A DNA stretch of 62,923 nucleotides, counting the filler, from Syncephalis fuscata S228 (taxonomy: Eukaryota; Fungi; Zoopagomycota), in NCBI GenBank assembly GCA_025786725.1. It is 5 parts of 5 records of this genome, joined end to end, with 100 filler letters (N's around TTAATTAATTAA, not from the genome) between each part and the next. Parts side by side here need not be neighbours in the genome. Positions count along the whole stretch, not along the records: positions 39,811 to 54,374 come from JAHLTZ010000229.1; 4 more parts are not named here. One strand, 5' to 3'. The position numbers and the translations under genes were made by a program. Positions 2,853-55,519 of this stretch are shown here, in pieces (the first letter of the stretch is position 1; each line of letters begins with the position of its first letter). The notes under the pieces are model-generated. The model worked only from the letters and a program-made list of their open reading frames with translations. It did not search any database and had not been told where the DNA came from.

Positions 2853-4439
2853 TCAAACAAGTTTGTTCATAGTCCAAATAGCAATGTCCTTGTTAGATAC
2901 CTTGACCAGCGTGTTCATATTTACTCTAACTTCGCCAGAAGTATCTTCTGCAGCAATCCAGCCAAGCTCAGAAGTATTGTCTAGATTAACTGTATAGAAT
3001 CCACCAGAAGGATGCTGAGCAATCCAGAATTGGTTAAGAACATATCCTGTATGAATCAAAGCACTTGCAACTCTGGTATTAAATATTGTTTGTTTTGTTT
3101 CCATATTAATTAGCGTTAGGTTAGTATCATCAAGAGTAACAATACAGTTATTCCTTATCGAAACAGTAGGTAGTTCATTGGAAAAAGTGCCCGAATAATG
3201 AACATATGATGAATATATATCATGAATAAAAAACACATTTTTCTGTTTAGCGCTATGGCTTTTGTTACTTTGTCCAAAAGAAAATTTGCGTATTCCGGAA
3301 GCATTGCTATTATTAGTTGTATTCAGTGATGCATTGTTTTCTGTATGATTTGTTTTCATGGATAAGGCCACTTGCCAGACCATTATAAAACTTTCGGTTA
3401 AAAAGCGCGATTGACGTGCACTGTATTTGCTAGTTTCCAGTGGTATGGATACATGTCTTTGTTCATTAATGGTACGTACATCAAGTATACTCGATTGTAG
3501 TATATCCCAGCTATGAGATGCAGATCCAAACTGCGTGCCAACACATAACGTACCCGCATACACTTGGCATGTAGTCTTGGTTGTATTGATAATTGAATAA
3601 GTATTCCACGCTGCCTCAGTTTTCACCGGTATTGGTATATTTTGTTCGAGATTTAATACATTAATTGAATATGATTCGGTGGATACTACAGGCTCTTTCA
3701 ATAGCAACCATTGATCGTGCAAGTCTACAATTTCTGTTGCGCCCTGATTGTACAAGAGCTCTTTTTTCTCTATTTGGCTAGGCTGTGTGAAATCCCAGTA
3801 GAACATAAAATCTTTAGCTACATCGGTGTTGTTGCTGCTAGCCGATCTTCCAGGGCCAGTTATTACAATAAATTTTCTGTTTAGCATACCCTTAATTAAA
3901 CTATGTGATTGTTGTGAAAAATTAGCAGACAAATCTGATATTAATAAAAGTTTTGGTGTGGGCCAATGTGCAGCAAAGTAGAGTGTATTTGTATTAGTTA
4001 AAATAAGTGTTCCCCATATATTACTGTCAAGAATACGGGTAGTTATTTGTAGATCATCATAACCTGAAGCATCTAAGATACTAAGTGTTGTACAATTGCT
4101 AATGCCATACTGCCAATTCTTTGCCAAACTAAATTGAGCAATATAGTGCTTTAGCCAATTGCTATTATTTTGTAGATTAGCAATACTATAGTCTGATACA
4201 TTCTTCTTCTTCTTTTCTAAAACGTTGTTATGCCACTCTATCCAGTCGCGTGTCTCAGTGCCATTGTAGAACCGGCTATAGAACCAGCGTTTCCAATCAA
4301 TGTCTTTTTCTTCAGCAGCACTGAAGATATTATAAAAAGCAGTAAGAAAAGGAAGCAGTGATTCATCGTCCAAATAAAAGACTACTTTCCAAAGTATCTT
4401 AGCAGGAAGACAGCATGTTGTAGAAAGTAAACGAGTCAT
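2853..4439 (-). CDS. Intronless 528-aa protein with N-terminal F-box-like motif and probable beta-rich C-terminus
   Basis: Long ORF; LPAKILWKVVFYLDDESL resembles the F-box consensus, followed by W-x-x-x-F/Y motifs. Confidence 0.6.
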   Translation of the reverse strand: MTRLLSTTCCLPAKILWKVVFYLDDESLLPFLTAFYNIFSAAEEKDIDWKRWFYSRFYNGTETRDWIEWHNNVLEKKKKNVSDYSIANLQNNSNWLKHYIAQFSLAKNWQYGISNCTTLSILDASGYDDLQITTRILDSNIWGTLILTNTNTLYFAAHWPTPKLLLISDLSANFSQQSHSLIKGMLNRKFIVITGPGRSASSNNTDVAKDFMFYWDFTQPSQIEKKELLYNQGATEIVDLHDQWLLLKEPVVSTESYSINVLNLEQNIPIPVKTEAAWNTYSIINTTKTTCQVYAGTLCVGTQFGSASHSWDILQSSILDVRTINEQRHVSIPLETSKYSARQSRFLTESFIMVWQVALSMKTNHTENNASLNTTNNSNASGIRKFSFGQSNKSHSAKQKNVFFIHDIYSSYVHYSGTFSNELPTVSIRNNCIVTLDDTNLTLINMETKQTIFNTRVASALIHTGYVLNQFWIAQHPSGGFYTVNLDNTSELGWIAAEDTSGEVRVNMNTLVKVSNKDIAIWTMNKLV

Positions 4440-4803
4440 TTTAACAAAAAATGAATAAGCACAAGGAACGATAGAATTGTAATTTAATGCTCAAATTTTT
4501 TTAATGATTTTTATAAAAAATTGATTGTGTACCAAAAAGGCCTTTCAGTTTCACTTATTATTGCCCTATTTGGCACTATGATTGATTTGACCATATTGAT
4601 TATAGCACATGCCCACACAAAACGGGTATTCTTTTACTCGATAGCTTTAGTCAAAATGGATAACAAGCCTTTAATCTAATGCTATCAAATTGGTATATAC
4701 ACACAAAACAAGCTAGAAATGACACATAATATAAAAGTAGTGTTTTATTTACAATGCAATAACATCGTTGCAACGTATTTTATAATATTAGATGTTTATT
4801 GTA

Positions 4804-5001
4804 CTAATGACTACAACCATAAATCCACATACCATCAGTTTTATCGCATGCTCCGTTAAACTCCATTCGCCTTTTATTATATGGGACCTTCTTAACTTCA
4901 CGCAGTAATTTGCCATTAGCATCTTCAAGAAACATGAAATAGCAACAGGTGCGTAGCATAGCTAAAATATCGCCACGGCGAACATCATCAAGAATAACTT
5001 G
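4804..5001 (-). CDS. Possible terminal exon of an unknown multi-exon gene
   Basis: After a GCAG acceptor reads QVILDDVRRGDILAMLRTCCYFMF...WIYGCSH*; splice-like signals continue upstream to ~5500 but I could not assemble the gene. Confidence 0.3.
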   Translation of the reverse strand, partial: QVILDDVRRGDILAMLRTCCYFMFLEDANGKLLREVKKVPYNKRRMEFNGACDKTDGMWIYGCSH

Positions 5002-6145
5002 CCTGCATAACTAATAGTGCAAGTATATCTATTTTAAATTATTTGATTCGTTACTTATTTGGCCGGATAAACGGTATACACATGGCATTTCACGCTATTC
5101 ATTTCAGAAATTCAAGTGTTTATGTGCTATACAAGTATATCTAGACCATTGCCCAAGTAAGGCTGTTCTATGATATACTCGAATTTCGATTGGTATGTAC
5201 ATCGAGTACAATGTGAAGCAGAAACAAGAAATTCTAATATTAACGATAAATCCTGCACTGGAAATCCTGAATGATGAGTCTGGTCAACCTGTTTTTCAAC
5301 CTGCTTTCATTGTTTATCCGAATGTCTTAAAACAATCTACTTACCTTGGTTGTGGTTTATTCCTGTACCTATTCAAACTTGGGGCCAACCAATGTGTAAC
5401 TATGATATCACCTTAATGTTCCTTATAGATAACTAGAATGCAGATCTTACTTAAAATAAACTGGTAATAGCATGATTGAGATTGAAACTGATCGGTTTGT
5501 TCAGACCCATCATGACATATCATTATTTAATCTTATAATATTAATAACATATTGCAATTATTTATATTTAATAACAGTAACTATTAATTAGCCACTCCGA
5601 CGTTTGATATAAAACTAGTGTAATAATAGAAATCAGTTACTCTGGGTACATGTATGATTGGCTTTTACTTGTTACAACAAGTTAGGTGTGCGTACTTTCG
5701 TCGCTAGGCCTTAGTTATGATGAATTTATTTATTTTGGGTGTATGTATGTTTGGTTTATTTGTCACAATAAATTAGGCAACATGCCATTTATCACTAGGC
5801 CTTATCTATGATGAATCCAGAATGCCATTTGTAGTAATGACACATAGGCCTACCATCTCAGCTATACATAGTTTACATTCAAGCCTTTTAGATACAATAC
5901 CGCGGATTGGAATATTGCTTAATGTTTAACCGGCTAATGCTAAAACAATCAAGGCGACAGACTAGCTACCTATTAGTAAAATAGATGTTAAGGTATAGCA
6001 AAGATGTATAAAAGGCGCGTTGAAATTCATATTTGCATTCCAACATTACAACACAACAACATCAGCTTCATCAACATCTAAACGCCTGCTCAGACAATAG
6101 CATTCAAATTAATCCCTACTCATTTATAAATCAAATTTATTCATT

Positions 6146-39131: not shown

Positions 39132-42100
39132 GTTAAATCTATAGGCCCTTCTCTCTTTTAAAAGTATATTGTTGTTGTTCAACTATGTGGAATGGGTCAA
39201 TTTTAACATTTAATAAAAATAATTATTATCTTTATTAAACTTGTATTTAGCCTGTATTTGATAATGGCTTGGTCATATCTATAGATTTTGTTATATTAAT
39301 TCTATTTTTGCTATTAATATGATAGTATCAAAAATAAACATGCGCATATAATACAATGGTATATTTGACTTGGTTTTGATTATTAGTATGATTTATTATT
39401 GAAACTGCGTTTATTATTGATCTGCCTAAGCAGTAGTTGTGTTTAATTGATACTTCTGTATTTGGAACATCATTATTACTGCATGTTATGTCGAATAATC
39501 TTTGTTATTTTTGCCGAAATAACAATTAAACGATTAGAATATTCTTATGTTTATATTTGATGAATCACAGGTGATTTCATGAGTGTATTTTTGTAGATAT
39601 CGGGATTAAACTAAATTAGATTATTTAGGCAGTGCTAATACTCAATAAGGTAATCACAAATAGGCACTCCGACCTTTGTACACAAGGCTTTATATGCAAA
39701 GCTGTGAGCTNNNNNNNNNNNNNNNNNNNNNNNNNNNNNNNNNNNNNNNNNNNNTTAATTAATTAANNNNNNNNNNNNNNNNNNNNNNNNNNNNNNNNNN
39801 NNNNNNNNNNCTTTCTACTTTGCTATACTGCAGTTTGTAGATAAGTAGATTGCCATGTGCATCGACCATGGCCTTTTCATAGTTTAGCAACACGTCGTTT
39901 CTCCGATTCGTTGACTACTTTTCGAGTAATAATTATTTAACATGCTTACTCTTCTGTGTTCACCTGCACCGACACGCGCTTACCCGCCATACTGCCCCAT
40001 CCATGCGATGCGGATAACGATGGTAGCAACACTGGCCTTGTTATTGTTAGTGCGGTAATCGCCATTACTACTACAACTACTACAACAGCAAATGCTATCA
40101 TTTCATCCATGTGCTTTTGCGTTAATTCAAACGATAGCCATTGAGCGATAGCCATCGCCACAACAACAAAAACTTGTAATTTCGCGTGTCATCATACTTT
40201 CCGTTTCATCTCGGTCTCTTCTCCTCCTTCTATTCACGTTTTTACTTGATATTGCTTTTATTGATCCGGTCGAGATTCCTTTTTGTTCTTGGCTCTTTTT
40301 CTTTTCTTTCTCTTATTTCTCTATCTGTTTATTTCCACTCACCTCCACTGAATAGTTCGCCTGTACCGACAGTCGTCACGCTTTATTTGACTGTACATCC
40401 TACGTGTACAACGCGTGTACTAGCACTTGTCTAAATAACCTTTCGTTATTCATAGTCAACGGCCTATTCATCCTTACTATTCCATCGGCTTGCTCTTCCA
40501 TAGTTGCCTGTTCCGTGATTCGTGTCACCATCTTTTGAAATTTTGGTGCCACGTTTAGTATTTCCCTACTTTTTTTCTATCATTTGAAAAATTTTCCGTT
40601 TACTGCTTTTCTCCTAACAACGGCAGCCATTACCATCATCACATAAAAAATAACAAATAACAGATAACAGCTACAACAATAGCAGTGACAGTACATCAAT
40701 AACCATAACAACACCCTTTTAGCCGTCCAGACAAAGTGATCTATTAACACCTTTACATAACTATATTGACTGTGTGATTTTACTAAAACTATTGCACTTG
40801 TTACCAAGTTATTATTTTGTTCACTTTGTGCCGCATCGCTTATCCGCGGCTATTCTTAGCACCGTACTAGCTAACTTTTGCAGTTTGGTTTCACCGTGTC
40901 TTCAGCCTTTTTTCCTTCATTATCTACAGGTATTCCTTAGCTTGCGTGCGTTCGTGCATCCGTACTTGTGTATCCTTCCTCTCTTTGCTCCCATTATCTT
41001 TTTTTGTTTTTTTTTTTTTATTTTTTATTATCTATCACTTCTGTGTTTGTTTCTTGCTTACTTATCAGTACCTTTGCTTTTTCTCCTTCCTCTCTCTCTC
41101 TCTGCACCTCGACTTGCCACGTTTTCTTAGCGGTTTCCTTTTGTATAAAAGGACTGAAATATTAGCGTTGGCCGTTTGTCCACGTTTAACCTATTCGCCA
41201 TTACCATTGACCGACCTTTCACGTACGCATTGTTCACTGCTAACCATAGTGTTATTTGTTTGAGTAACCATTGCTGACGCGTACATTGCTTCATTTATCC
41301 GTTTTTATCATTTCTATCTTAATACGTTTTCTTGTTACGTACAATCTTTGGCATTTTATTTTCAGCTTTATTCAAACGTCATCACACGTGAAATTCATTA
41401 TAATAATTTCTACTAAAAACCGGCCAACAATTTGCATTCTGATCCCCTCATTTGGCACAGAAAGCAACGAAAACGACGGACGATCTGACCACGCGGAGAA
41501 TTTGATTTGAACACACACAGCACACAGCACCAATAACAACACCATCAACAACAACATCCTTTGCTGGCGATCATTGAGTTACCGAAACAAGACTTGTTCA
41601 CCTCCTTTGCTTTCCATCTTCAGCCTTACCTTGAACTCTGGTACTGTCATTATTCCTATACAACGCCGAGCCTCCTTTTCCATTCTATTAAGGCTACTTT
41701 CAACTATCTGTGCTGTTGTTATTGTCACCACCACCATCATCATCCTTCTCTACTCTGGTTATTATTATTACTATTATAATATTTAATCTAGTCGTGCTAC
41801 AACATCCGCATCGATTTGATACGCTTTATTTCTACAAAGTTGCCGCACCGTTTTTTCAGCTTCTATCACGTGCTGTTGGTGCGTGGTGCGCAGGCGTACA
41901 TCTGGCTAAGTTGTATTTGACGCTTTATTGGATTAATTTCCTAATAGCACGCTTGCTTGGCCTGGTGCTATCAATTTGAACTTTGCTTAGTTTGCCTTTA
42001 TTTCTATCGGTATCAGTATATTTACACTAGCAAATAAGCCCACCTCTTTGTAATTTGGCAAGCATTCGTCATTCTTTAAACCTTAATAGCTCGCCACCGT

Positions 42101-42334
42101 AATTCTATTGGTGTGTACGTGCACTTGCGCGCGTGCCTGTGTTGGTCGTTATTAGTTCATAATACGCTTGCTTCCCCCTTGACAGCGGCTCATATTGTTT
42201 CTACTTCTTGTCGTTCTTTTTCATCTCAAACGACGGCATTCCTTTTCGTTAAAACTTACTCATTGGTCGCAACTTGCATTGCATATTCACCTATCTACAC
42301 CTAATTTCTAAAGTTATATTGAATAGTTTGTACA

Positions 42335-42528
42335 ATGTCGCTCTTTGGTCACCTACGACGCTACATAGTGCCAGCTTTGCGGTTAACACGGTTCATGGTT
42401 GTTTGGGGCTCTATCACGGTGACACTTTGGATACTCGCCTTGCCTGTTATTGCTCGCGAAGTATTCAAAGGTTTATTACGTCGAAATGCTGCTCGTAATA
42501 CACAGCCGTCTTCTACACAGCAGCAGCA

Positions 42529-42560
<32 letters not shown>

Positions 42561-42931
42561 AGCAATCACCACCGTCACAACAACAACAACAGCAACAGCA
42601 GCGACGATCACCAACATCACCAAATCGTCGTTATGCTACTGCAGAAAATCGCTCAGCAGCACGACAGTCCTATAATGATAATACAGGTGCATCTTGGTCA
42701 CGTTCCAGCTCTAATGACTCTACCAATGGTCATTATTATCGAACATCCACCTCATTTACTAACGAAAATCTAGCTAATGGCCGTACTCATACTACTACTG
42801 CTAGTCATCGATCGGGCCGTCGTACACCGCCCAAATATACACGCACCCAAGTACCACCTTCTCCTCCGCGTAGTACATCGCCTCCTCAGCCACGAGTTCA
42901 TAATGTCTCGCCTAGTGGATGGCATATGTAA
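42335..42931 (+). CDS. 198-aa protein with N-terminal hydrophobic segment and poly-Gln tracts
   Basis: ATG-initiated ORF, TM-like FMVVWGSITVTLWILALPVI, CAG/CAA repeats, Ser/Pro/Arg-rich tail. Confidence 0.65.
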
Positions 42932-45132
42932 TTAAGGAGTAATTATAGCAACATTTATATACTTATACATGTTTGCAGATATGAATATGTCATTTGCATA
43001 TGAAATGGATTTTTCCATTTTTAAATTTAATGGAACTTTACTGTTTGTCTTAAATCTTGCTTAAAATATTATTAGTGCTATGTTCAATTGATTATCGGAG
43101 TAGATAGGATGCGCGGATATATGTGCAACGATGCAATCCAGAATGGTAAAAATATATCTTAGCGCTCAATAAATACTACTTTTATCCAGACTTACGAAAT
43201 AATCAAAATACTTTTTATTATGTTAATTGTTACTAAATATATGTTTTATAATAATGAATAGTTTTAATGTCAAATAACTTTTATTCTCAATGCATTTATT
43301 CATTTACTATCAATCTGTTCTATGATGTGCCGACATGTTGGGTAGATTGACTTTTATTATTTACACTCCATTTATTAATGAATTAAACTCGGCTGTTTAT
43401 AAATATTGACTGACAGGCTCACATCTCACAATCTACGTCATCACACTTTCCTTTCTCTTTCTTCACACTTGGCAGCATATATCCATTACATATACTTGTA
43501 CACTCTATATATACTAATTAGATAGTGTTAGTAGTTGACTAGCTACTAGTCAAGTACAAACACCTTCTACACTATGTACTTGGATTGCTCTTTTGTAATC
43601 TGACCCCTTTTTATAAATCACCATTGCTCTGATTATTATTACTGATACCTTTACTAACACGGTAAGTGCATTTTTTTGGTTATAGTATGTTATGTCGCGT
43701 ATATTCCGCCACAGTAATTGTATAAAAAAGCTGTACATACGCACAGTAGCAATATCAGCAATAATACTAGTATAATTTCTGAATAAGCCTTTAGTACCAG
43801 TTTAACAATATGATCTGCTACTGTTCTTACTACTGTACGTGTACAGTTGCTAGCGCAATTGCTGTGTTAATTATATGTGCTGTTATTTCTTGGCCGATTG
43901 CCTTTTTTTGCTCTATTCCAGTATTTGAATAATTTCATTTATCAGTATTTCTTGTTAAGCAGCAATATTTGTATGGCGTTGTGTTAAACTTTTTATTTCT
44001 GCATTGCTTTTCTTGATCTAGTACTGTAATTAGCATCAGTTTTTATGAAGAATTATTGCAGTATATTTTTTTATAGTACATACTACTGGCCCATATATAA
44101 GACGCGTTATTTTTAACTATTAAGCAGATATTACTATATTTTATTCAATAAAGTATATTCGCAATAAAAGCATAGAAGAAATTACACAAATTGCAGCGTG
44201 TTTATGGTGTGCATTTCAAAAAATTACTTTTATTATTAAATAAATTACTATATTTTCTTATTCAATTGCTTGATAATAACATTCGCAGTTAATAACAATC
44301 CACCACGCCTAAAATTATCAGATAATAAACTTTAACTTTTTTGGTTAAATTATTTGGCATTTGCTTAGCTACCACTTTTACGGCTATTATGTCGCGTAGA
44401 TTTAAAGATATTAGTATAGCTGCCTGTACTCATATTGCTGTATTTAATTTAAATAATAAAGACTTTTTTAAAAAATCAATCTTAATACACACTAACAATA
44501 TTGTCGTAAGTCTAAAGATAAGAATATGTCTTAGATTGCTTTGCATAGATATATTAAGATACTTGTGTAGTACACGCTCACTGTAAATACATACATGATT
44601 TACCCATCTTATAATAAAGTATTGGTCTTCACTCTATTTTATTTTATTAATTAGTTGGTTGTCTTTTCATGACAACGTATTTGTTTTGTTAATTTATTTA
44701 TTTTTATAGTATTCTATGCTTTTTTGCCATGTTTTATTAAAAAGTGCCTTTATTCTAATTTCAGTATACTATTATTTGGCTATATGATAATGATAGCTTT
44801 GCTACTATCCATACCAATCTATGTTTATAGCTTACACGATATAATTATAGATATAGCAATTTGATTGTATATAATTAATATGGAACCATAAATTTATTAC
44901 TATAAGCTTGCACAGTTGAATAGGAACAACTAAATGCAATCTTGTTGGCAAAATAATGATTCCATTGATTAAAGACTGGATAAACCAAAGCATTGGCCAA
45001 AACTTGATATATAAATAGACTGGACGGCTTATTTGTCAAATGACCTTGCTTTTCACCAAATATATACCTAAAGTGTATTGGAATAGTGATTTGATTGCAC
45101 TACCAATGCTGATGTCTTGAAACCATCAATCA

Positions 45133-46055
45133 TCCTGTATTTACAAATAAAGATATTGTATGTCATATAATTAATGCATAGCTAGTCAATATATAATGGT
45201 ACTTACAGCCTATTATTATTAAGTTATTTATACGCATAATACATGGGCATAATTAGTGCATAGTCAGTCAATATATAGTACAACTTACACTCTATTAATA
45301 TTAAATATTTATACGCATAATACATGATCATAATTAGTGCATAGTCAGTTAATATATAATATTACTTACTGACTATTAGTATTAGGTTATTTATACGCAT
45401 AATACATGGTCATAATTAGTGCATGGTTAGTTAATATATAATGCAACTTACTAGCTATTATTATTAAATTTTTAATACATATAGTAAACGATACATGATT
45501 AGTGTATAGTCAGTTAATATATACTACAACTTACGCCCTATTGGTATTAAGTTATTCATACGCATAATACATGGTACATAATTAGTGCATATTCAGTCAA
45601 TATATGATATAACTTACAGGCTATTAATATTAAGTTATTTATACGCATAATACATGGGCATAATTAGTGCATAGTCAGTCAATATATAGTATAACTTACA
45701 ACCTATTAATATTAAGTTAGAAACATGCATGATACATGGTACATAGTTAGTGCATAGTCAGTCAATATATGATATAACTTACAACCTATTAGTATTAAGT
45801 TATTTGTACGCATAATACATGGTACACAGTTAGTGCATATTCAGTAAATATACAATACAACTTACGAGCTATTAATATTAAGTTAGAAATACTGTTAGTA
45901 AGCATAATAATATGATATATCTACTGTCATTGAAACATACCACGGCGAACCAAAGCTGATTTATCATCCACAATGACTGGTTTAGCATCCGCCATGGTTG
46001 TAGCGGCTATCAAAGCCACGACAATAGTGCAAACAACGGCAATGGAAAGCTTCAT
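45133..46055 (-). CDS. Microexon-array peptide precursor, locus 3 (11 exons, 47 aa)
   Basis: Exon 1 46055-45941 MKLSIAVVCTIVVALIAATTMADAKPVIVDDKSALVRR+G; nine 3-nt exons CTC GTT GTT CCT GGC CTA TCA AGT GCT; last exon GA completes TGA. Mature ARCSWPIKC. Confidence 0.9.
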
Positions 46056-48036
46056 GGTGATGTTGATTTGTTAAGACAAACAACTAAAAGAAATAGTAGT
46101 GTGTGATTGATATAAAGTGGAGAGTAGTGTGTGTTTAGTAATAAGTAGAGTACGATGATGATATTGCAGTTGGTTGTGTATATTTTGTGGGCCATTTATA
46201 CTTACGGTTATGCTGAGATGCTAGTATACTGTAGTATACAAGGTATACCATTGATGTGTAGTATGAACCAATAAAGCAATTCAAGTGATGGTCTGGAATG
46301 CACATGTACCAATAGATTCATGGTTTAATAGGGTGCTTCTAGCCTTTACTTCAGTCTGCCTAGTCTTGATTTAACCTATCCGGTCTTTACTCCAATCTGC
46401 TAGTCATTTGCACGAGTACTGTAATAGTGTTTATAACCCAGTATATATGAGATAAAAATAGACATATTAACTTGTATTTTCTGTTACACAGTTTGACTAT
46501 TTGGTAAAAGCAAGATACTGTTTGGCTTTGTAAAAATGATAGCGGTGCTTTTGCTGCCATTTCTACCGATTTGGTTCTCAATATCTGCATGCATACAGAA
46601 TAACATACAACACTGATACAAAAACAAGTTTAATGTATGAAACTAGTATTTTATACAGGTTTTTACTGCTATACATAGGTCAGTTGTTATTTTTAAATTA
46701 TAAAGCGTATTAATTAATTTTATGCATGCATTCCATTCGACACTATGCCCATTATTATGGGGTAATAATTGTTTTGAATTCACAAATATATCGTACCCAA
46801 GCATATCATGCTACATGTTGTGCAACTACCATCATTCAAATGGTGGCTAATCTAAATCACCTGGAATCGACTATACAATAAGTACTGTTTGTAACATGAT
46901 ACATCACAGAATTTTGAGCAATAAAGCATTCTAACAAGTCATTTTATCAGTTTCAGTTGTAGACTAAATTGTATCGGCTAAATTACACGCAATACAATAT
47001 GCAGACACTAGACTAAACACAATAGAAAGTTCTAACCAAATATCAGCAATTTCAAATGCATAGTGACTGTGAATTGTATATCAATTAGTAATTATCCAAG
47101 GTCTAAGTTTTGTTTGCATTTCTGAACCACTTCTAACAAGTTAAGCAAGTTGGAATATAGAAGCACAAGCCAAAGCAGAAATCAATGAAAAAACAACTGG
47201 CAACTTAAAGGCTTACTGGTTTAACCTGTAGCAAATTATTATAGTTATGTTAAACTGGACTGTGTTCATCAAAAGTCGATTGTTGCTGATGCGACTATAA
47301 CAGCAGCAATGTTAAACCGAGATAACTCACAGAAAACAGAGAGATGTAAATATAATTGAATTAACAAGTTTAGTAGGCAAATAACTGATTATTGTCACTA
47401 TAACTTATAATTCTGGCTGTTTGTATGGATAGATATTTACAATTAAATTGTAACTTCTTATATACTTACATTTACACGATCACCAACTAAGCCTACTATT
47501 ATAAAGCTTAATTTAACTACTTATTAAAGCAGCTAATATTCTGCATTATTGCAATAATAGAAAGACATATTAATTTTATTTATTGAGCATTAATAAAAGC
47601 TGTATAACTATATATTAAAACAAAATAAAACATTAGATTGAGTGTGTAATATTTATATTGTCATGAGTCTAAAGATAAAAATATGTCTTAGGTTGCTTGG
47701 CACAGATATATTAAGACACTTGTGTAGTACACGCTTACTATAAATAGATACAAAATTTGCCCATTTTATAATAAAATATATTAGCTTTTTAGTTTTGTCT
47801 TCTAATTAGTGTTATACAGTTTATTCAGTTTATTATAGTTAAACTATGCTAATGATAAGCGATAAGGAATAAGTTTACTTTCAAACCAATGTTAACTAAT
47901 TGACATTTTGTATTTTACAAGTTAGGTTTAGTAAATATTGAATATCAGCATTATACAATAGCATCAGAATAATTTGTCGTTTAATCATTTAAGCTACATA
48001 GCTATAATCAGAGCTATAACAATATAAAGATGGTCT

Positions 48037-48768
48037 TTATATTTGACCGGATAAACTAAGCGATTCAATAACTATAACAGCAATAAGAAGCGATACAACG
48101 CCTACAACATTGACAATTCCCCATCGTTTGCTTTCCTTATGCTTTGAGAATGTCCAAAAAGCGCCAATGACCCATAGTGGAGGTACTAAAAATCCAAACA
48201 TAAATGTGAACATTGGGAATGGGTGTCGTCGCCAAAAAGACTTCTTATGAGCAATTGCTACTTGTATATCTTGAAAGTCGCTTGGCGTTTCTTGCTGATA
48301 CATTTCCTTGTGGTACATTTCTCGTCTGTTTAGATCTGAGAAATTATTAGAATAGCTTTCTGAATATGGATCGGCTATGTCACCATAGAAGTAACGGCCT
48401 TGCACGTGCTGTGCTGGAACAGCAGGAGCTGGCAACTCTGGCGCATAAGGCGGCGGCGGTGGTGGCGGCTTAAAATGGGTATTTTCTGCGTACTTGGGCG
48501 TCACCATCTTGAGCGTCTTGTCGTACGCGTTGATTCCGAGGCCTATATTCGCGGATGACGGCTCAGCAACTACTTGCGAATAGAGTCGTTTTCGATATGT
48601 ATCATGGCTTGGCGTGCTACCTTCCCTACCACGACCATTATTTTCCTCGCCATCAATTCCTTTTGGTGTTGTTCGTCGCTTCTTTTCTGTGCCTTCAAAC
48701 GTACTCATGTCGGCGATATGGGCTTTAGGCGTTGTGTAAGTATTACCTTTATCGAATGTAGATGTCAT
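48037..48768 (-). CDS. PY-motif protein with C-terminal TM hairpin, 243 aa
   Basis: PPPPY; FMFGFLVPPLWVIGAFW...RWGIVN. Confidence 0.8.
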   Translation of the reverse strand: MTSTFDKGNTYTTPKAHIADMSTFEGTEKKRRTTPKGIDGEENNGRGREGSTPSHDTYRKRLYSQVVAEPSSANIGLGINAYDKTLKMVTPKYAENTHFKPPPPPPPYAPELPAPAVPAQHVQGRYFYGDIADPYSESYSNNFSDLNRREMYHKEMYQQETPSDFQDIQVAIAHKKSFWRRHPFPMFTFMFGFLVPPLWVIGAFWTFSKHKESKRWGIVNVVGVVSLLIAVIVIESLSLSGQI

Positions 48769-49526
48769 GGTTTTATGGACTAATCAATATTATTGTAATA
48801 AGAAATAAACAAGGAGAGATGACATCGTTTATAATAAATCTCTGACATTTTGGAAATTTGTAGTTGATGTTTCAAATTTATGATGCACGACAAATTTTTG
48901 AATACAATACCCGATACTACTAAAGTAATATATATATATATATATATAATTGAGATGGCTGTACTTAGGTTGCTTTTAGGCAAAAAATACTATATAACAA
49001 TATTTTTAAAAAAAATAATACTTAATTCTTGAAAGAAATACAAAAAGATTATAATTAGTTTTATGAAAATGGGGTAAACAATTAACTTTATGTTTAAACC
49101 AATGCGTTTATTATCATTACCTTAATTGTAATAAATGATAAATTATTATGGAAATAAATTAACAATTACATCATGTAGTCGCGCATAATATGCGATTAAA
49201 AGCTTTAGTTATTTTTTATTGCTAAAATGATTTATTAAAATCCAATTATTTTTACGTAACTAAAAAAACACCTAAAGTATGGTAAAATGCATCTAATTCT
49301 TGAACGTAAAAAGAATTAAATAATTTATAATTACCACATTTAATAATATTAATTACTACATTATCTAAAATGGTAATGTAGTGTTTGGAATGGAATTGAG
49401 TAATAAACAAATTTTCATCACATTTTATTATACTTCAGGTGTTATAATGACTTCAGTATAATAAATCATCTAGTCGACACTAAACAATATTGCTGGTTAT
49501 TAATTGTAAAATTGGTTAGCATTGAC

Positions 49527-50694
49527 TTACATTGCCGCAATTATTATAGCTAAAAGTATAACGGTTAGAATGTTAATGGCACACATATATGACCAGTATC
49601 TTTCTCGGGGGATTTTGGAGCGTATCCAAAACAAACCAAATACCCAAAGCAATGGAAAGAGCCACCCAAAAAGCCAGAATACCATAACAAGAGGAATTGT
49701 TGTATTGTTTGAAATTGAAACTGTATCTCCTTGTCGTCTCCAGCGGCTATCACGGAGCGCCTCTTCATCTACTGGATCCTCCACTATGGTAAACCTTCCA
49801 TGAGAAGCCACTGTGTATGTGCCTGGAGGCAAGCTTGTGTACACGGGACTTGGAGTGTAGCCCGGCGGTGGTAGCTCGGGACTATACGGCCGATTAGTAG
49901 TTTTTGGTGGCGACAAGTGATAATGATACTCAGGAGGTGGAAACATAGTGGCTTCTGAGCCTGTGTTGCTATTCATAGCATGTGCTGGAACTGAAGCATC
50001 AGGTTTTCTGATGTGACTATGTCGGTGAGGAATAGCAGGAAGTGAATTTGCATGACTATTCACGTTATTTAAGTCTGTATATTGCATTGAAGTGCCAATG
50101 TTCGACGTATGACCTGTGGAGTCATCGTGGCCATTCTGACGCTGTGTACTTGTAATCATATACGCCGGTGGTGGCGACCCACTACGTGAAATTTCACTTA
50201 TATTGGTATTGGATTGGCGAGCAGAAGTATGTTCATTAAGTGATCCAGTGTCTGTTGTTGGCTGTCTTGTTCTTATAGCTACATTACTAGTTGTTTGCTA
50301 TCCAATGAAATTAAATTTAAAATATATAGTTAGTATTTTACTGCTGTCTAATTATAACAAATTGCTTTTAGCTTAATATACTTACTTCGGGTTGACCATG
50401 TACTACTTGAGGGACATTATCGATGGAATTGTCATGTTCACTGCTTTTATCGGATGATGATTGTTCTGAAGAGGCCCTTGATATTATATCAAATTGGCTC
50501 GAATCGCTGCTATGTGATATAGCTGAATTCTCGATTTCTGCCACAGCCTGACTATTAACAACTTTTGGCTCGGGAGCCTCCAAGTTAACATTGAGAAATC
50601 CATTTTTGACTTGAGACGATATAGAGGAACTTGATAATGTAGAATCTTCTTCCTGCTCATCAGGCGACCTCTTGTATTCACTGTTGTTATCCAT
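49527..50694 (-). CDS. PY-motif protein with C-terminal TM hairpin, 359 aa, 2 exons
   Basis: Exons 50694-50386 and 50297-49527 join in phase 0; PPPAY, PPPEY, PPPGY; FWLFGWLFPLLWVFGLFW...YWSYMCAIN. Confidence 0.8.
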
Positions 50695-51395
50695 TGCGTA
50701 TCAAAAACTAAATTTAAAAAAATACAAAGTAAAAGCAAATAAAGTTAAACAATGTCTTGTTACATTTTTGCTTCATCTACCGTCACACCTTTGTTTCACT
50801 TATTGTCGCATAACTTACTAGAAAGCCTTAAATTACTTGCTCAAATGTAAATACTAAATGTTTAGATAGGTACCATAAGAAAAATATAGTGCTTATTTGC
50901 TCAATAAAATAACAACAGACTATATAATAAAATAAGTTGTGAGTTCAAAATGTTTGAAAAATAAAATAATATTGCGATAATTACAAATACTTTTGTCATG
51001 AAACATGTCTCACGTACAGCTATCTAAGGCTAAAGTTTACGTATTCTTAATTTTGAGTTTGTAATTATTAACAAATAACAAACTAGATTATACATTAAAA
51101 TAAGGAAATAATTATTTTATTAGCATTTGCTAATAAAACTTTCAGATAAAATTGCCATTATATCGTGTTATAATCATACCGCTCCTTTGTCATTAAAAAT
51201 TGAATAGCCATAGCAAGAAACTATATGAATAATTTGGTTAATTTGTTTTAAAAAACAACATTAGTTTAAAACTTACCTTCAATACCATGGCAATAGATGG
51301 CTAAAATTCTTACTAGTCAGCCTTCAAAACTACTTTGATTAACTGCCATATCTTTAAAAAACATTAGCCAAATAAATCGGAAGCCATTTACTAGC

Positions 51396-52013
51396 CTACC
51401 TGATGCCGACGACTATTGAGACGATAAGCGATGACAACGCAAAACAAAAGTTGATCCAGGCCCAAAAGCGCACACGCGAATGGCGAGAAGTTAGCCAGTA
51501 ACTGCCGATAAACCATAGGATAGGAAAGCAGAAACCAAAGATAAACAGCCAAAAGGTTACCGGCAAGCCACAGCAGCTGGGAGCTGATCCTCTTGCGCCT
51601 GGATTTTCATCTGGATCAAAACCACGCGCTTGCTCCAAATTATTGGGCGTGTTTTCTAACACTACCATCGGCGGTGCCACATGTCCCTTTTCCTTTATAT
51701 AAACACCTTGTTCTTTGCTAGCGACAACTGGCATTGTAAATGGATGTGTATCTTTTTCTTCGTGTACTTTATCTGGATAGAAAGGTGCAGTATATGTATA
51801 GTTTTCTGAGGTGGCTGCATGCTCATTGTCCTTGGATGACAGTTTACTACCATGATCTTCGGTTAAACTGACTTCATCCCAAGGCAAGTGCTTTGTATCC
51901 GATTCCAGTGGTTCTGTTTTATCGATTGCCAAGTATTCATCAACAATCTCCTTTCCCTTAGCAGATTTATTGCTTGGCGCACCAGACGATAATGGGACCA
52001 TAGGAATTGACAT
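51396..52013 (-). CDS. Membrane protein with the same C-terminal TM hairpin, 205 aa
   Basis: CCGLPVTFWLFIFGFCFPILWFIGSYW...FWAWIN. Confidence 0.8.
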   Translation of the reverse strand: MSIPMVPLSSGAPSNKSAKGKEIVDEYLAIDKTEPLESDTKHLPWDEVSLTEDHGSKLSSKDNEHAATSENYTYTAPFYPDKVHEEKDTHPFTMPVVASKEQGVYIKEKGHVAPPMVVLENTPNNLEQARGFDPDENPGARGSAPSCCGLPVTFWLFIFGFCFPILWFIGSYWLTSRHSRVRFWAWINFCFALSSLIVSIVVGIR

Positions 52014-53260
52014 TTCACGCCAAGGCTATAGCTACTGCTGCTAGTTGAATATTTTTATGAATGATCAAAATAGCTGCTAAAATAGAGGTGTTTTTTTGTA
52101 TATATTATATCTGGATATTATGAATAGCAGCTGATTTAATGTTGCTTTAGTGATAACTGACTTGCAGCTATACGAATTTAATCCATAGAAAATGTGATAT
52201 TGGGAGAGTGACAGTAAACAAAGATTGTACAAGTCAATTATAAAAGCTATTTGACGCCACCAGTGCGCAAATACAACAATAACAAAGATCTTGGTTTAAA
52301 AGCGACAAAAGAAAATAGCAAAAGCAGAATATACTAATCCAGCGTTTAAATAATTGTCGACAAGTAATTACTGACTGCCATGCCATTTATGAATATTTTG
52401 GCGTGGCGTCTTTAGTTTGTGACGCACTAGATCGTTGCATTGCGTCATTTTTGAGTATATTTTGTATATTAAATTATCAATTATACAACGAAAAAATAAA
52501 GGTTGTGAAATATTTATGATGTTGTAGTTGCTATGGTTTTCAATTTAGTAGAGATTTTACATGTTTATATTATTTTATTTACAAGTCTGTTGATATAAGC
52601 GCATTTACTTCATTTAGAATTACTTCTATAAAACTTAATTTTACTAGTACTAAATTTTTAATACTGGAAATACTAATCAACTGCTATTTCACTAAATAGT
52701 GGCGATAAAAGCTTGAAACTATTGTGAATGTATATGGTGTTTGTAGTAGTATTTTTGCAGCTATTTTAAAAATGACAACGTATGGCAATAACACACCAGT
52801 TGATCGTATAATAAAATATGCATAACATTATTCTGTAGCAACAAAGGCACTAAAGCTATTGTGCAAATGGCTTGTATAGCTGAATAAGAACAATAGCGGC
52901 AGCATGGCCATTGATGGCCAATAAGTGCAGCAGTGGCAACACTTGGCTGCCATCAAATGTTATTGGTGCCCATCAATATCTAGCTAATTCTAATTTAGTT
53001 GACGAATACCAGCAAGCGGAATAAGAAGCAACAAATTATTTGACGTCTTCCTATCGTGTTGGACAGTTTGCCACATCTTGACATTCATTATACCATTTAC
53101 TCGCTTGTTGCCGATATTCCTACTTTATATAAGCTTGCACATGTGTGTATTTATTATTGCCAACATTATTAGTATTCTCCAACTGTAACGACAGCACTCA
53201 TTGCTATTAGTGTTATTTAAACAGCATTTTAAATTTGGAATAGGCGGCGCTGTCGTATTT

Positions 53261-54352
53261 ATGCCGACGCAACTTTACACAGCTCCTTATCTCTTTTTCC
53301 TCCTCTATCTACCTTCATCTTGCAGTCATCAAACGTAGCAAAGTGCAGTACACTTGTTTTTTGGTACAAGATATTGTAATTCCATTCAATTCAGCGTGAT
53401 ATTCAACGATGCGATTTGCCTGGAGCTTGATAGGCATCGTTTTCCTTATCATAGGCAATATTGTATACATACAAGGCGAGGTGACTCTACTGGTAAGTAT
53501 AACAACGATAGTGTTGTATACTGGCTTACCAACAATGATTTTATGATGTAGGATTCAAAACAACGATATACAGTAAGTGACCATAATCAGCTGAATTATT
53601 AGTTAACGAATATTTGTATGAAATTAGTCGTGTAGTGCTCGATTTGGAGGAAGATTGGTGGCATCTTATGCACCACGCGATGTCACTCAAGACAGTGGCT
53701 GGGTGTGGTCCTTTTGGAACAAGCTACTAAATTACCACACCAAAGGCATTTTATTAAGTAGAAAGCTGATACGACAGCTAGAATACCAGATAGAAAAAGC
53801 CATAACAGTAGCTTTTACTTCGCGTCTAATCATTTATGAAAATACCACAACCGGAAAAGATATAAAAGAAACAACTGCAGTTGATAATCAGTTTCAACAA
53901 GAGGACGATACCACCTCATCAGACCATTCGGCTACTTCATTTCCACCCCCCAGTCCAATTCGTCTATTTACTAGTGTTACAGGCCCGATTGTTCCATTTG
54001 AACTTGTTCAGCGAGGCAATCGGCGTGGCTGTCATCCAGTTACGCCATCAGAAGTTGATAAAATGCTAATGGAAAACAATATATCTATCGAAACTCGCTT
54101 TTCCAGCGATGAAGCGATAAAAACCAATACGTTTAGCGCTGGCTATTTATCAACTACATCAAGTGATAATAATAGCGAGCCTATCGACAAAATACCTTCA
54201 CTGTTGGATACTCATGGATGGATAGCATTAATAGAACGTGGTAACTGTGGTTTTATAGAAAAAATACGTCACGCACAAACTGCTGGCGCTTCAGCCGTTA
54301 TTATCGGCAACCATGAAGGCATTGGACTGATATATCTCTTGATTGCTGATGG
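53261..54352 (+). CDS. 5' part of a PA-domain protein (possibly PA-TM-RING E3 ligase), truncated by gap
   Basis: WIALIERGNCGFIEKIRHAQTAGASAVIIGN is a PA-domain signature; start and upstream exons uncertain. Confidence 0.65.
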
Positions 54353-55519
54353 TAAGCCCAATTAAAATTTTGATNNNNNNNNNNNNNNNNNNNNNNNNNN
54401 NNNNNNNNNNNNNNNNNNTTAATTAATTAANNNNNNNNNNNNNNNNNNNNNNNNNNNNNNNNNNNNNNNNNNNNAGTTTATACGACTAAAAGTATGAGTA
54501 AATGGGTTTCTCGCCTATTAAGATTGATACCATATGGTATATTACAGTGCGTATATGTTGTACTGGGCCCCAATACTAGTTTATACAAGGTCTCAAATAC
54601 GCTAATTGGATAATAAGTTTATGGGTACTATTGCTATGCGATATGTTCTATGAATTATAAAGCTTGTATTTATTGCAGACTACAGGGCAAAACATAGGTG
54701 AGTTAAATTATTTTGATTTGTTAGCCATATAATAAAGATTGGCATTATAGCAAATGAATAGAATTATGTAATATACTAAAACTATACCCTATATTGTTAA
54801 GATTATCAGTTAGGCAATAGGTTGTAAATACTTGTGATAATGCTTAATTTTAATGCTGAATGTACAAGACATATTGTATAATTGTTGCATCACATTTAGT
54901 ATCTTTCCAAACGTGTGCAGAATGGTAAATTTAGGTTACTAGTAAATTGAAATCAAAATGTGTGCAGATATTATTGAGTTTATTTATAAAATTTTAAAAC
55001 GTGAAATAGTTTATATTATTCTTTTGTACAATTAATGTTGGTATCAAGTGTTTTTACATGCATTTGTAGTCCGTTGCTTAGCTGATGATTTCTAACAATA
55101 TATAATATGCTTTTTAATACATTATACATTTCTCGTCATTTTGCTATAATGCTGATCTTTATTTTATAGCCAACAAATCAAAAATAGCTAATTCGCCTTT
55201 GTTTGCCTTGTATTATGCACCAAATACAGGTTTACTGCGGATAGATCATGTCGCGTGACAGTAATACACGCATGTTTATTGGCCAATTAGCCTACTCGAA
55301 AACTTGTATAGACTAGCATTGGAATGCCAGCATAACATACATTTACTGCAATATATACCATGGCATCGGCTTCTAATAGGCGAAACCCCATTTACTTATT
55401 TTTCTTAGTCGCATATAATCTTAAACTTGCAATAGTTATCCAACCTCTTAATCTTTTATTATTCTTATTATTATCCAAATAAGATATCTTGTTTATAATA
55501 TATAAAATCAACAACAACA

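Follow-up and report, generated by a model that had tools for sequence, protein, structure and literature searches.

In the truffle Tuber melanosporum the NACHT-ANK (nank) genes are described, in the passages of PMC4986451 and PMC9815663 that cite Iotti et al. 2012 (Fungal Biol 116:261), as containing dozens of 3-bp, codon-sized mini-exons, alternative splicing of which diversifies the C-terminus of the protein. As far as these passages go, fungal spliceosomes are therefore able to join strings of 3-nt exons. Codon-sized exon arrays as such have already been published. They were previously described only in truffle immune-receptor genes, and a literature search on tandem 3-nt exons, Syncephalis micro-exons and micro-exon-encoded fungal peptides found none besides this Tuber precedent.

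The micro-exon genes (MEGs) of Schistosoma encode secreted proteins whose signal peptide lies in a normal first exon, and most of their coding region is made up of very short exons (about 6-36 nt) with lengths that are multiples of three; the frame is thus preserved when exons are skipped, which varies the product, and the introns do not repeat a single unit in tandem. Precursors of the conotoxin and defensin type have a conserved signal and pro-region followed by a hypervariable mature peptide with a cysteine framework, which changes rapidly between relatives. Precursors of the alpha-factor type usually contain several copies of the mature peptide within one exon, and we know of no micro-exons in Kex2-processed peptide genes of this type.

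The window analysed here is a stretch of 62,923 nucleotides from Syncephalis fuscata S228, joined from five parts, of which positions 39,811 to 54,374 (the piece referred to below) come from contig JAHLTZ010000229.1. On the minus strand of this piece, in the region 45133-46055, lies what is probably an unannotated Syncephalis gene for a small secreted pre-pro-peptide, the mature part of which would be encoded wholly by tandem 3-nt exons in 83-nt units. New in Syncephalis, in comparison with the truffle genes, are the secreted cysteine-peptide precursor, the use of phase 1, the occurrence in another phylum and the presence of very different arrays between near-identical flanks.

Structure of the nine-unit gene

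On the minus strand the gene is compact; it is unannotated, and its modelled product is a small secreted pre-pro-peptide. Its features, in the order of transcription, are as follows.

46194..46200, minus strand: TATA-like box TATAAAT, about 140 nt 5' of the ATG, read directly; putative promoter element
46095..46150, minus strand: 28-nt direct repeat, two copies with CACACACTACT, in the 5' leader/promoter region (TRF period 28, 2.0 copies, 78% matches)
45941..46055, minus strand: coding part of exon 1, 115 nt, ending ...CGC CGT G before GTATGT; phase 1
45869..45940, minus strand: intron 1, 72 nt, GTATGT...TACTAAC...TTCTAAC...TAG; kept in JAHLTZ010000055.1, including TACTAAC
45866..45868, minus strand: micro-exon 1, CTC, as AG-CTC-GTAAGT
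45783..45785, minus strand: micro-exon 2, GTT, AG before and GTAAGT after
45700..45702, minus strand: micro-exon 3, GTT, AG before and GTAAGT after
45618..45620, minus strand: micro-exon 4, CCT, AG before and GTAAGT after
45535..45537, minus strand: micro-exon 5, GGC, AG before and GTAAGT after
45452..45454, minus strand: micro-exon 6, CTA, AG before and GTAAGT after
45370..45372, minus strand: micro-exon 7, TCA, AG before and GTAAGT after
45289..45291, minus strand: micro-exon 8, AGT, AG before and GTAAGT after
45207..45209, minus strand: micro-exon 9, GCT, the final T being the first base of the stop codon
45210..45865, minus strand: introns 2-9, 78-80 nt each, copies of one unit, alternating with micro-exons 2-8
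45135..45206, minus strand: last intron, 72 nt, GTAAGT...ACAG; about 94% identical to JAHLTZ010000055.1
44950..45134, minus strand: last exon and 3' UTR, in which GA completes the stop codon; about 94% identical to JAHLTZ010000055.1; 3' end approximate

The TATAAAT box aligns with TTTAAAT at a second S. fuscata locus, on contig JAHLTZ010000055.1. The direct repeat, which lies just 5' of the start codon and is partly kept at the same locus, may be a regulatory element. The start codon is at 46055 in the context CACCATGA. Exon 1 translates as MK, sixteen hydrophobic residues and TTMA, followed by an acidic/basic pro-region that contains a 7-residue duplication and ends in a dibasic RR. The hydropathy maximum over ten residues at the N-terminus is 3.3, and its likeness to a signal peptide was judged by inspection; cleavage by a Kex2-type protease is likewise a prediction made by inspection. 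The RR pair, the last two codons completed in exon 1 and adjoining the predicted mature peptide, is also kept in JAHLTZ010000055.1. The 38-codon open reading frame of exon 1 belongs to no Pfam family, and a shared-word search among 5.8 billion proteins found no homologue of the leader, which counts against our reading of the gene.

As exon 1 contains one base more, the G after RR, the exon that follows is in phase 1. The joined model in this phase reads from the leader through VRR to Ala-Arg-Cys-Ser-Trp-Pro-Ile-Lys-Cys (ARCSWPIKC) and stops. Cysteines are at positions 3 and 9 of the modelled nonapeptide, and the second abuts the stop codon, which is formed by T(45207) and GA (45134-33); another in-frame TGA follows directly. 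This agrees in every exon coordinate, from 45866 to 45207, with the preliminary description, which had also given ARCSWPIKC, ending on Cys, as the product. The count of nine units holds only insofar as this tandem repeat, whose units 4 and 9 are 97.5% identical, was assembled correctly.

Canonical signals are found in all ten introns: each is GT...AG, contains a branch-point-like CTAAY and leaves the exact 3-nt spacing. Introns 2-9 all run from GTAAGT to TAG and all contain CACTAAC or CACTAAT, and in most of them a second TAAC is present about 15 nt before the 3' end. Such splice signals are normal for this genome, since the two introns (59 and 55 nt) of a nearby PA-domain RING gene also have the form GTAAGT...TAG; that gene includes one exon of 21 nt.

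Conservation within the unit

Tandem Repeats Finder reported the array with a period of 83 nt, 8.7 copies and 82% matches. A pattern of three GTAAGT donors and two AG-N3 exons at intron-sized spacing occurred seven times, against none in 100 shuffles. No copies of the intron unit and no second array were found elsewhere in the piece.

The pairwise identity of the three exon columns is 0.21-0.29 (mean 0.26), the value for unrelated bases, and that of the 80 intron columns is on average 0.86. Among the 83 three-column windows in the unit, the exon columns have by a wide margin the least identity. Averaged over pairs of units, divergence is 72% in the triplets versus 14% in the introns, and even the closely similar introns 4 and 9, with two differences in 79 positions, are flanked by triplets that differ at three of six (Fisher P 0.002). 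This conservation profile places the triplets under a regime different from that of the rest of the unit; a neutral minisatellite behaves otherwise. For the nine-unit copy alone, the open frame and the two cysteines are not distinguishable from chance by shuffling (P 0.06-0.28).

A longer array at the syntenic locus

Contig JAHLTZ010000055.1 of S. fuscata (L122) runs colinear with the piece to either side of the gene, with flanks that are 93-97% identical. The promoter, 5' leader, exon 1 and intron 1 of the nine-unit gene all align with this locus, and identity is about 94% over the last intron and the 3' region. The leader is the same except that it is 21 nt shorter and does not have the 7-residue duplication. 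As it is short by exactly this length, the duplication in the window (DAKP-VIV-DDKS), pointed out in the preliminary description, is real. A shared leader, related intron units and a shared 3' region are also what the preliminary description had noted for its locus 1.

The array between these flanks is much longer. It comprises 33 micro-exons, 30 of 3 nt and three of 6 nt, the latter with the acceptor AG shifted three bases upstream, and it is also in phase 1. The joined model gives 37 residues after RR, starting DPEQC and ending KQYCL, with six cysteines and no internal stop; the frame stops at the second codon of the last exon, and the peptide ends Cys-Leu-stop. Each of the six cysteine codons spans a junction between an exon ending in T and one starting with GC or GT. 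When the order of the exons was shuffled the frame was open in 5% of cases, at least six cysteines were present in 0.03% and both were found in 0.01%. The probability of a frame without stops and with at least six cysteines is thus about 1e-4, and nucleotide shuffling gave about the same value. Family members, according to the preliminary description, should have neither random stops nor a missing cysteine pattern, and this expectation was borne out here. Its view that one scaffold yields different peptides through the number of units is also sustained by the pair, whose modelled peptides differ in length and cysteine pattern: nine units and a two-Cys nonapeptide at one locus, 33 micro-exons and a six-Cys 37-mer at the other. 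The annotation of JAHLTZ010000055.1 has no gene at the position of the array, which counts against our reading of the locus as a gene.

Despite the near-identical flanks, the two modelled mature peptides are unrelated. The window units are 86% alike among themselves versus 71% to the JAHLTZ010000055.1 units, and the nearest neighbour of every window unit is another window unit. Only the unit of micro-exon 9 (GCT) is clearly orthologous to a unit of JAHLTZ010000055.1. The array has therefore been turned over or homogenised within each lineage, the triplets staying different. When S. plumigaleata and S. pseudoplumigaleata were examined at the syntenic position, neither the array nor the leader was found, and this too is counted against our reading.

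Insertions of about 0.5-0.9 kb are present in two introns of the long array (L122 13112-14001 and 14495-14994). They have a similar starting sequence and the same position in the unit, and may represent a small mobile element, either inserted into a unit or duplicated along with one. With two of its introns carrying insertions, the JAHLTZ010000055.1 copy is perhaps itself damaged or impaired. Part of one insertion resembles a tRNA by eye; ARAGORN found no tRNA in it.

Codon-sized exons in Tuber and in metagenomes

An array of 3-nt exons is present in the Tuber magnatum gene at 3001-5658 of PYWC01000113.1 (L121). Its joined triplets start M-R-R-E-L-E-F-L-L-R, which resembles the tail M-R-S-E-L-N-D-L-L of a T. 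melanosporum transcript-variant protein (P0082). The public T. magnatum model (P0071) does not join the 3-nt exons and ends by reading into the introns of the array, from which it follows that annotated truffle NACHT-ANK proteins have wrong C-termini. The T. magnatum array extends into an assembly gap.

When the generic array pattern was scanned over metagenome contigs, at least 120 contigs matched. Among the matches listed, about 48 are chains of at least five units with variable triplets and better conserved introns, and these arrays have about two stops in about 500 triplets in frame 0 and many in frames 1 and 2. The introns are 95% alike in L008, L027 has more than 30 units, and L051 is an old array with diverged introns in which the 3-nt spacing is intact. 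Several arrays (L050, L027, L120, L041 and L081) are in frame after NACHT, winged-helix or ankyrin open reading frames. Homologues of the L027 open reading frame are Pezizomycete proteins, including Tuber entries named 'NACHT-ANK domain protein transcript variant'. Neither blastn nor tblastn matched the nine-unit gene to any of the 120 array-bearing loci among the matches listed.

Among the metagenomic loci listed, L109 stood out when they were screened for a hydrophobic exon 1 leading into an open frame. At 4450-5500 on its plus strand a signal-peptide-like exon 1 is followed by 3-nt exons CAT, GGG, AGG, AGG, GAT...CCC, CCC, AAA, CCC; the introns are not copies of one another, and the locus, which is unrelated, adds a second example in which one-codon exons may contribute to a secreted product. 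Identical triplets or runs of them (45 GGA; AAT, GAT and CTT three times each; runs of TAT and CAT) are present in L013 (18-3180, plus strand), L106, L063 and L085. These arrays look like snapshots of local unit duplication that is followed by change of the codon at single bases.

The Syncephalis gene shares with the Tuber NACHT-ANK genes the tandem arrangement of a short canonical intron and a 3-nt exon, found here as nine AG-NNN-GTAAGT units. In both, the introns are far more alike than the triplets and the array is a source of variation in a fungal protein. In Tuber the host protein is large, intracellular and NLR-like and the array encodes its C-terminal tail, whereas in Syncephalis it would encode the whole mature part of a secreted precursor of about 47 residues, and no NACHT or ANK open reading frame lies upstream on the same strand. 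Triplets of the Tuber type, and those of the NACHT-linked metagenomic arrays, are whole codons in phase 0, but the Syncephalis triplets are in phase 1 and the codons straddle the junctions. The intron sequences are unrelated, and Tuber belongs to the Pezizomycetes whereas Syncephalis belongs to another phylum, the Zoopagomycota. On these comparisons of sequence the Syncephalis arrays are probably of independent origin.

The likeness to Schistosoma MEGs is one of design only: an exon for a signal peptide, here a predicted one, comes first, and symmetric micro-exons supply the coding region of the mature part. Those are flatworm genes with no sequence relationship to this fungal one, and the exons here are of 3 nt (apart from the three of 6 nt in JAHLTZ010000055.1). 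The gene differs from conotoxin- and defensin-type precursors in that their mature peptide is encoded in one ordinary exon and varies by point substitution, whereas in the Syncephalis model there is a residue per repeat unit and the length is set by the number of units. A signal peptide (predicted in the model), pro-region, dibasic site and short mature peptide are common to the model and to Kex2-processed peptides of the alpha-factor type.

Alternative readings of the locus

The gene family may be real and the nine-unit copy nevertheless contracted, collapsed or decaying, in which case the array might be skipped as one 806-nt intron (...VRRG-stop) or its product might be functionless, and ARCSWPIKC would be accidental. 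We consider this rather unlikely, though several points speak for it. The coding signal of the nine-unit copy alone is not significant, and the syntenic locus contains as many as 33 micro-exons. The frame survives however many 3-nt exons are skipped, and a direct splice from exon 1 to the last exon would meet a stop immediately. Units as similar as those with 2/79 differences invite unequal crossing-over or collapse in assembly. Against decay, all ten introns retain GT...AG, CTAAY and the exact 3-nt spacing, and triplets saturated with differences between introns that are 86% alike are hard to obtain by neutral decay. The cysteine directly before the stop also counts against decay, the long version ending similarly in Cys-Leu-stop. 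It is much harder to regard the locus as a non-coding minisatellite whose unit happens to resemble an intron, which is not spliced into codons and in which any function would lie in the repeated RNA, for instance as a host gene for small RNAs. The array is certainly a tandem repeat and tandem snoRNA-carrying introns exist in other organisms, but it is precisely the three bases between AG and GT that vary, the relative with 33 micro-exons retains an open, cysteine-rich frame in the phase of exon 1, and at both loci the array comes after an exon that resembles a signal-peptide exon and ends in a dibasic pair. Nor do the introns contain a significant RNA fold (z -1.3 to +1.5 versus shuffles) or a box C motif, and Rfam gave no family at threshold, the sole hit being mir-454, whose 24 bits fall short of the gathering score of 60. 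A snoRNA or small-RNA host gene was rejected on the basis of this sub-threshold hit and of folds no better than those of shuffles; we regard the minisatellite reading in general as very improbable.

A conserved hormone- or pheromone-like ligand with a single disulfide, as put forward in the preliminary description, would be in keeping with a small predicted secreted peptide that has a dibasic processing site and cysteines as its third and ninth residues, and Kex2 processes the precursors of peptide pheromones in fungi. A conserved ligand is difficult to reconcile with a mature part that is unrelated at JAHLTZ010000055.1 although the flanks are 93-97% identical, and with the lack of the array at the syntenic position in two congeners; that part of the description is not upheld. 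There are also no repeated mature copies as in alpha-factor-type precursors and, to our knowledge, peptide sexual signalling is not established in the fungal group of Syncephalis. This role therefore seems improbable. Syncephalis belongs to the Zoopagales (Zoopagomycota), and Zoopagales fungi like it are obligate parasites of other moulds. This lifestyle, the replacement of the mature part between near-identical flanks and the cysteine framework of the long copy all favour an effector- or toxin-like role, and a fast-evolving effector, toxin or defence peptide would fit better than a hormone or pheromone.

Proposed route to the peptide

The preferred reading, a secreted pre-pro-peptide gene with its mature part in codon-sized exons, suggests the following route. 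The gene would be transcribed from the TATA-containing promoter. Each 83-nt unit would act as a 3-nt exon with a canonical short fungal intron of 80 nt, and every codon, including each cysteine codon (T/GY), would be made only on the joining of neighbouring exons. As a 3-nt exon is too short to be held by two spliceosomes, the introns would be removed sequentially, most likely 5' to 3' with transcription and by intron definition, each splicing step adding three bases to the upstream exon. The pre-pro-peptide would then enter the secretory path and a Kex2-type protease would cut after RR, releasing ARCSWPIKC, the two cysteines of which may be closed to a loop by one disulfide. Skipping of any subset of the exons would keep the frame and, in phase 1, each skip would remove one residue and recode its neighbour, making a diversity of isoforms possible. 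Gain, loss and homogenisation of units in the array, with the triplets kept different, would account for very different peptides from this locus in close relatives.

More tentatively, we can envisage an as yet unseen Syncephalis family in which each residue of a mature cysteine-peptide has its own repeat unit, which arose independently of the truffle NLR arrays and which, through gain and loss of units, homogenisation of the introns around differing triplets and perhaps exon skipping, supplies modular, strain-specific and possibly combinatorial peptides usable against host fungi. Members could be listed by a simple periodic pattern together with the leader exon. If the gene is spliced as modelled, codon-sized exon arrays would be a recurring fungal route to hypervariable proteins and not a truffle curiosity, serving here for a secreted peptide of a distant phylum, and the locus would be an extreme test case for splicing, with ten introns 3 nt apart and codons and cysteines that exist only at junctions. 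It would also explain why annotation misses such genes, with nothing called in S. fuscata and a T. magnatum model that enters the introns, and would suggest that mycoparasites possess effector-like peptides of a class so far hidden.

Genomic neighbourhood

The PA-domain RING E3 ligase gene (53410-54365, plus strand) has a signal-like start and is cut by the edge of the piece; the sole match in a search with its PA-domain open reading frame was a Syncephalis pseudoplumigaleata RING ligase (49% identity). Another open reading frame, at 42335-42931 on the plus strand, contains a long polyglutamine tract encoded by CAG/CAA repeats (TRF 42517-42620), and its Pfam hits are weak and of low complexity.

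Three tandem single-ORF paralogues of 243, 210 and 205 residues lie on the minus strand at 48037-48768, 49527-50159 and 51396-52013. They belong to no Pfam family and have in common a C-terminal membrane segment, F-G-x-x-x-P-x-L-W-x-x-G-x-[FY]-W. In an exhaustive HMMER search the 243-residue open reading frame (48040-48768), near the array, was 97% identical to S. fuscata KAI9591346.1, with more distant relatives in S. plumigaleata, S. pseudoplumigaleata and Thamnocephalis. For the three paralogues together, relatives were found in Syncephalis species and Thamnocephalis only.
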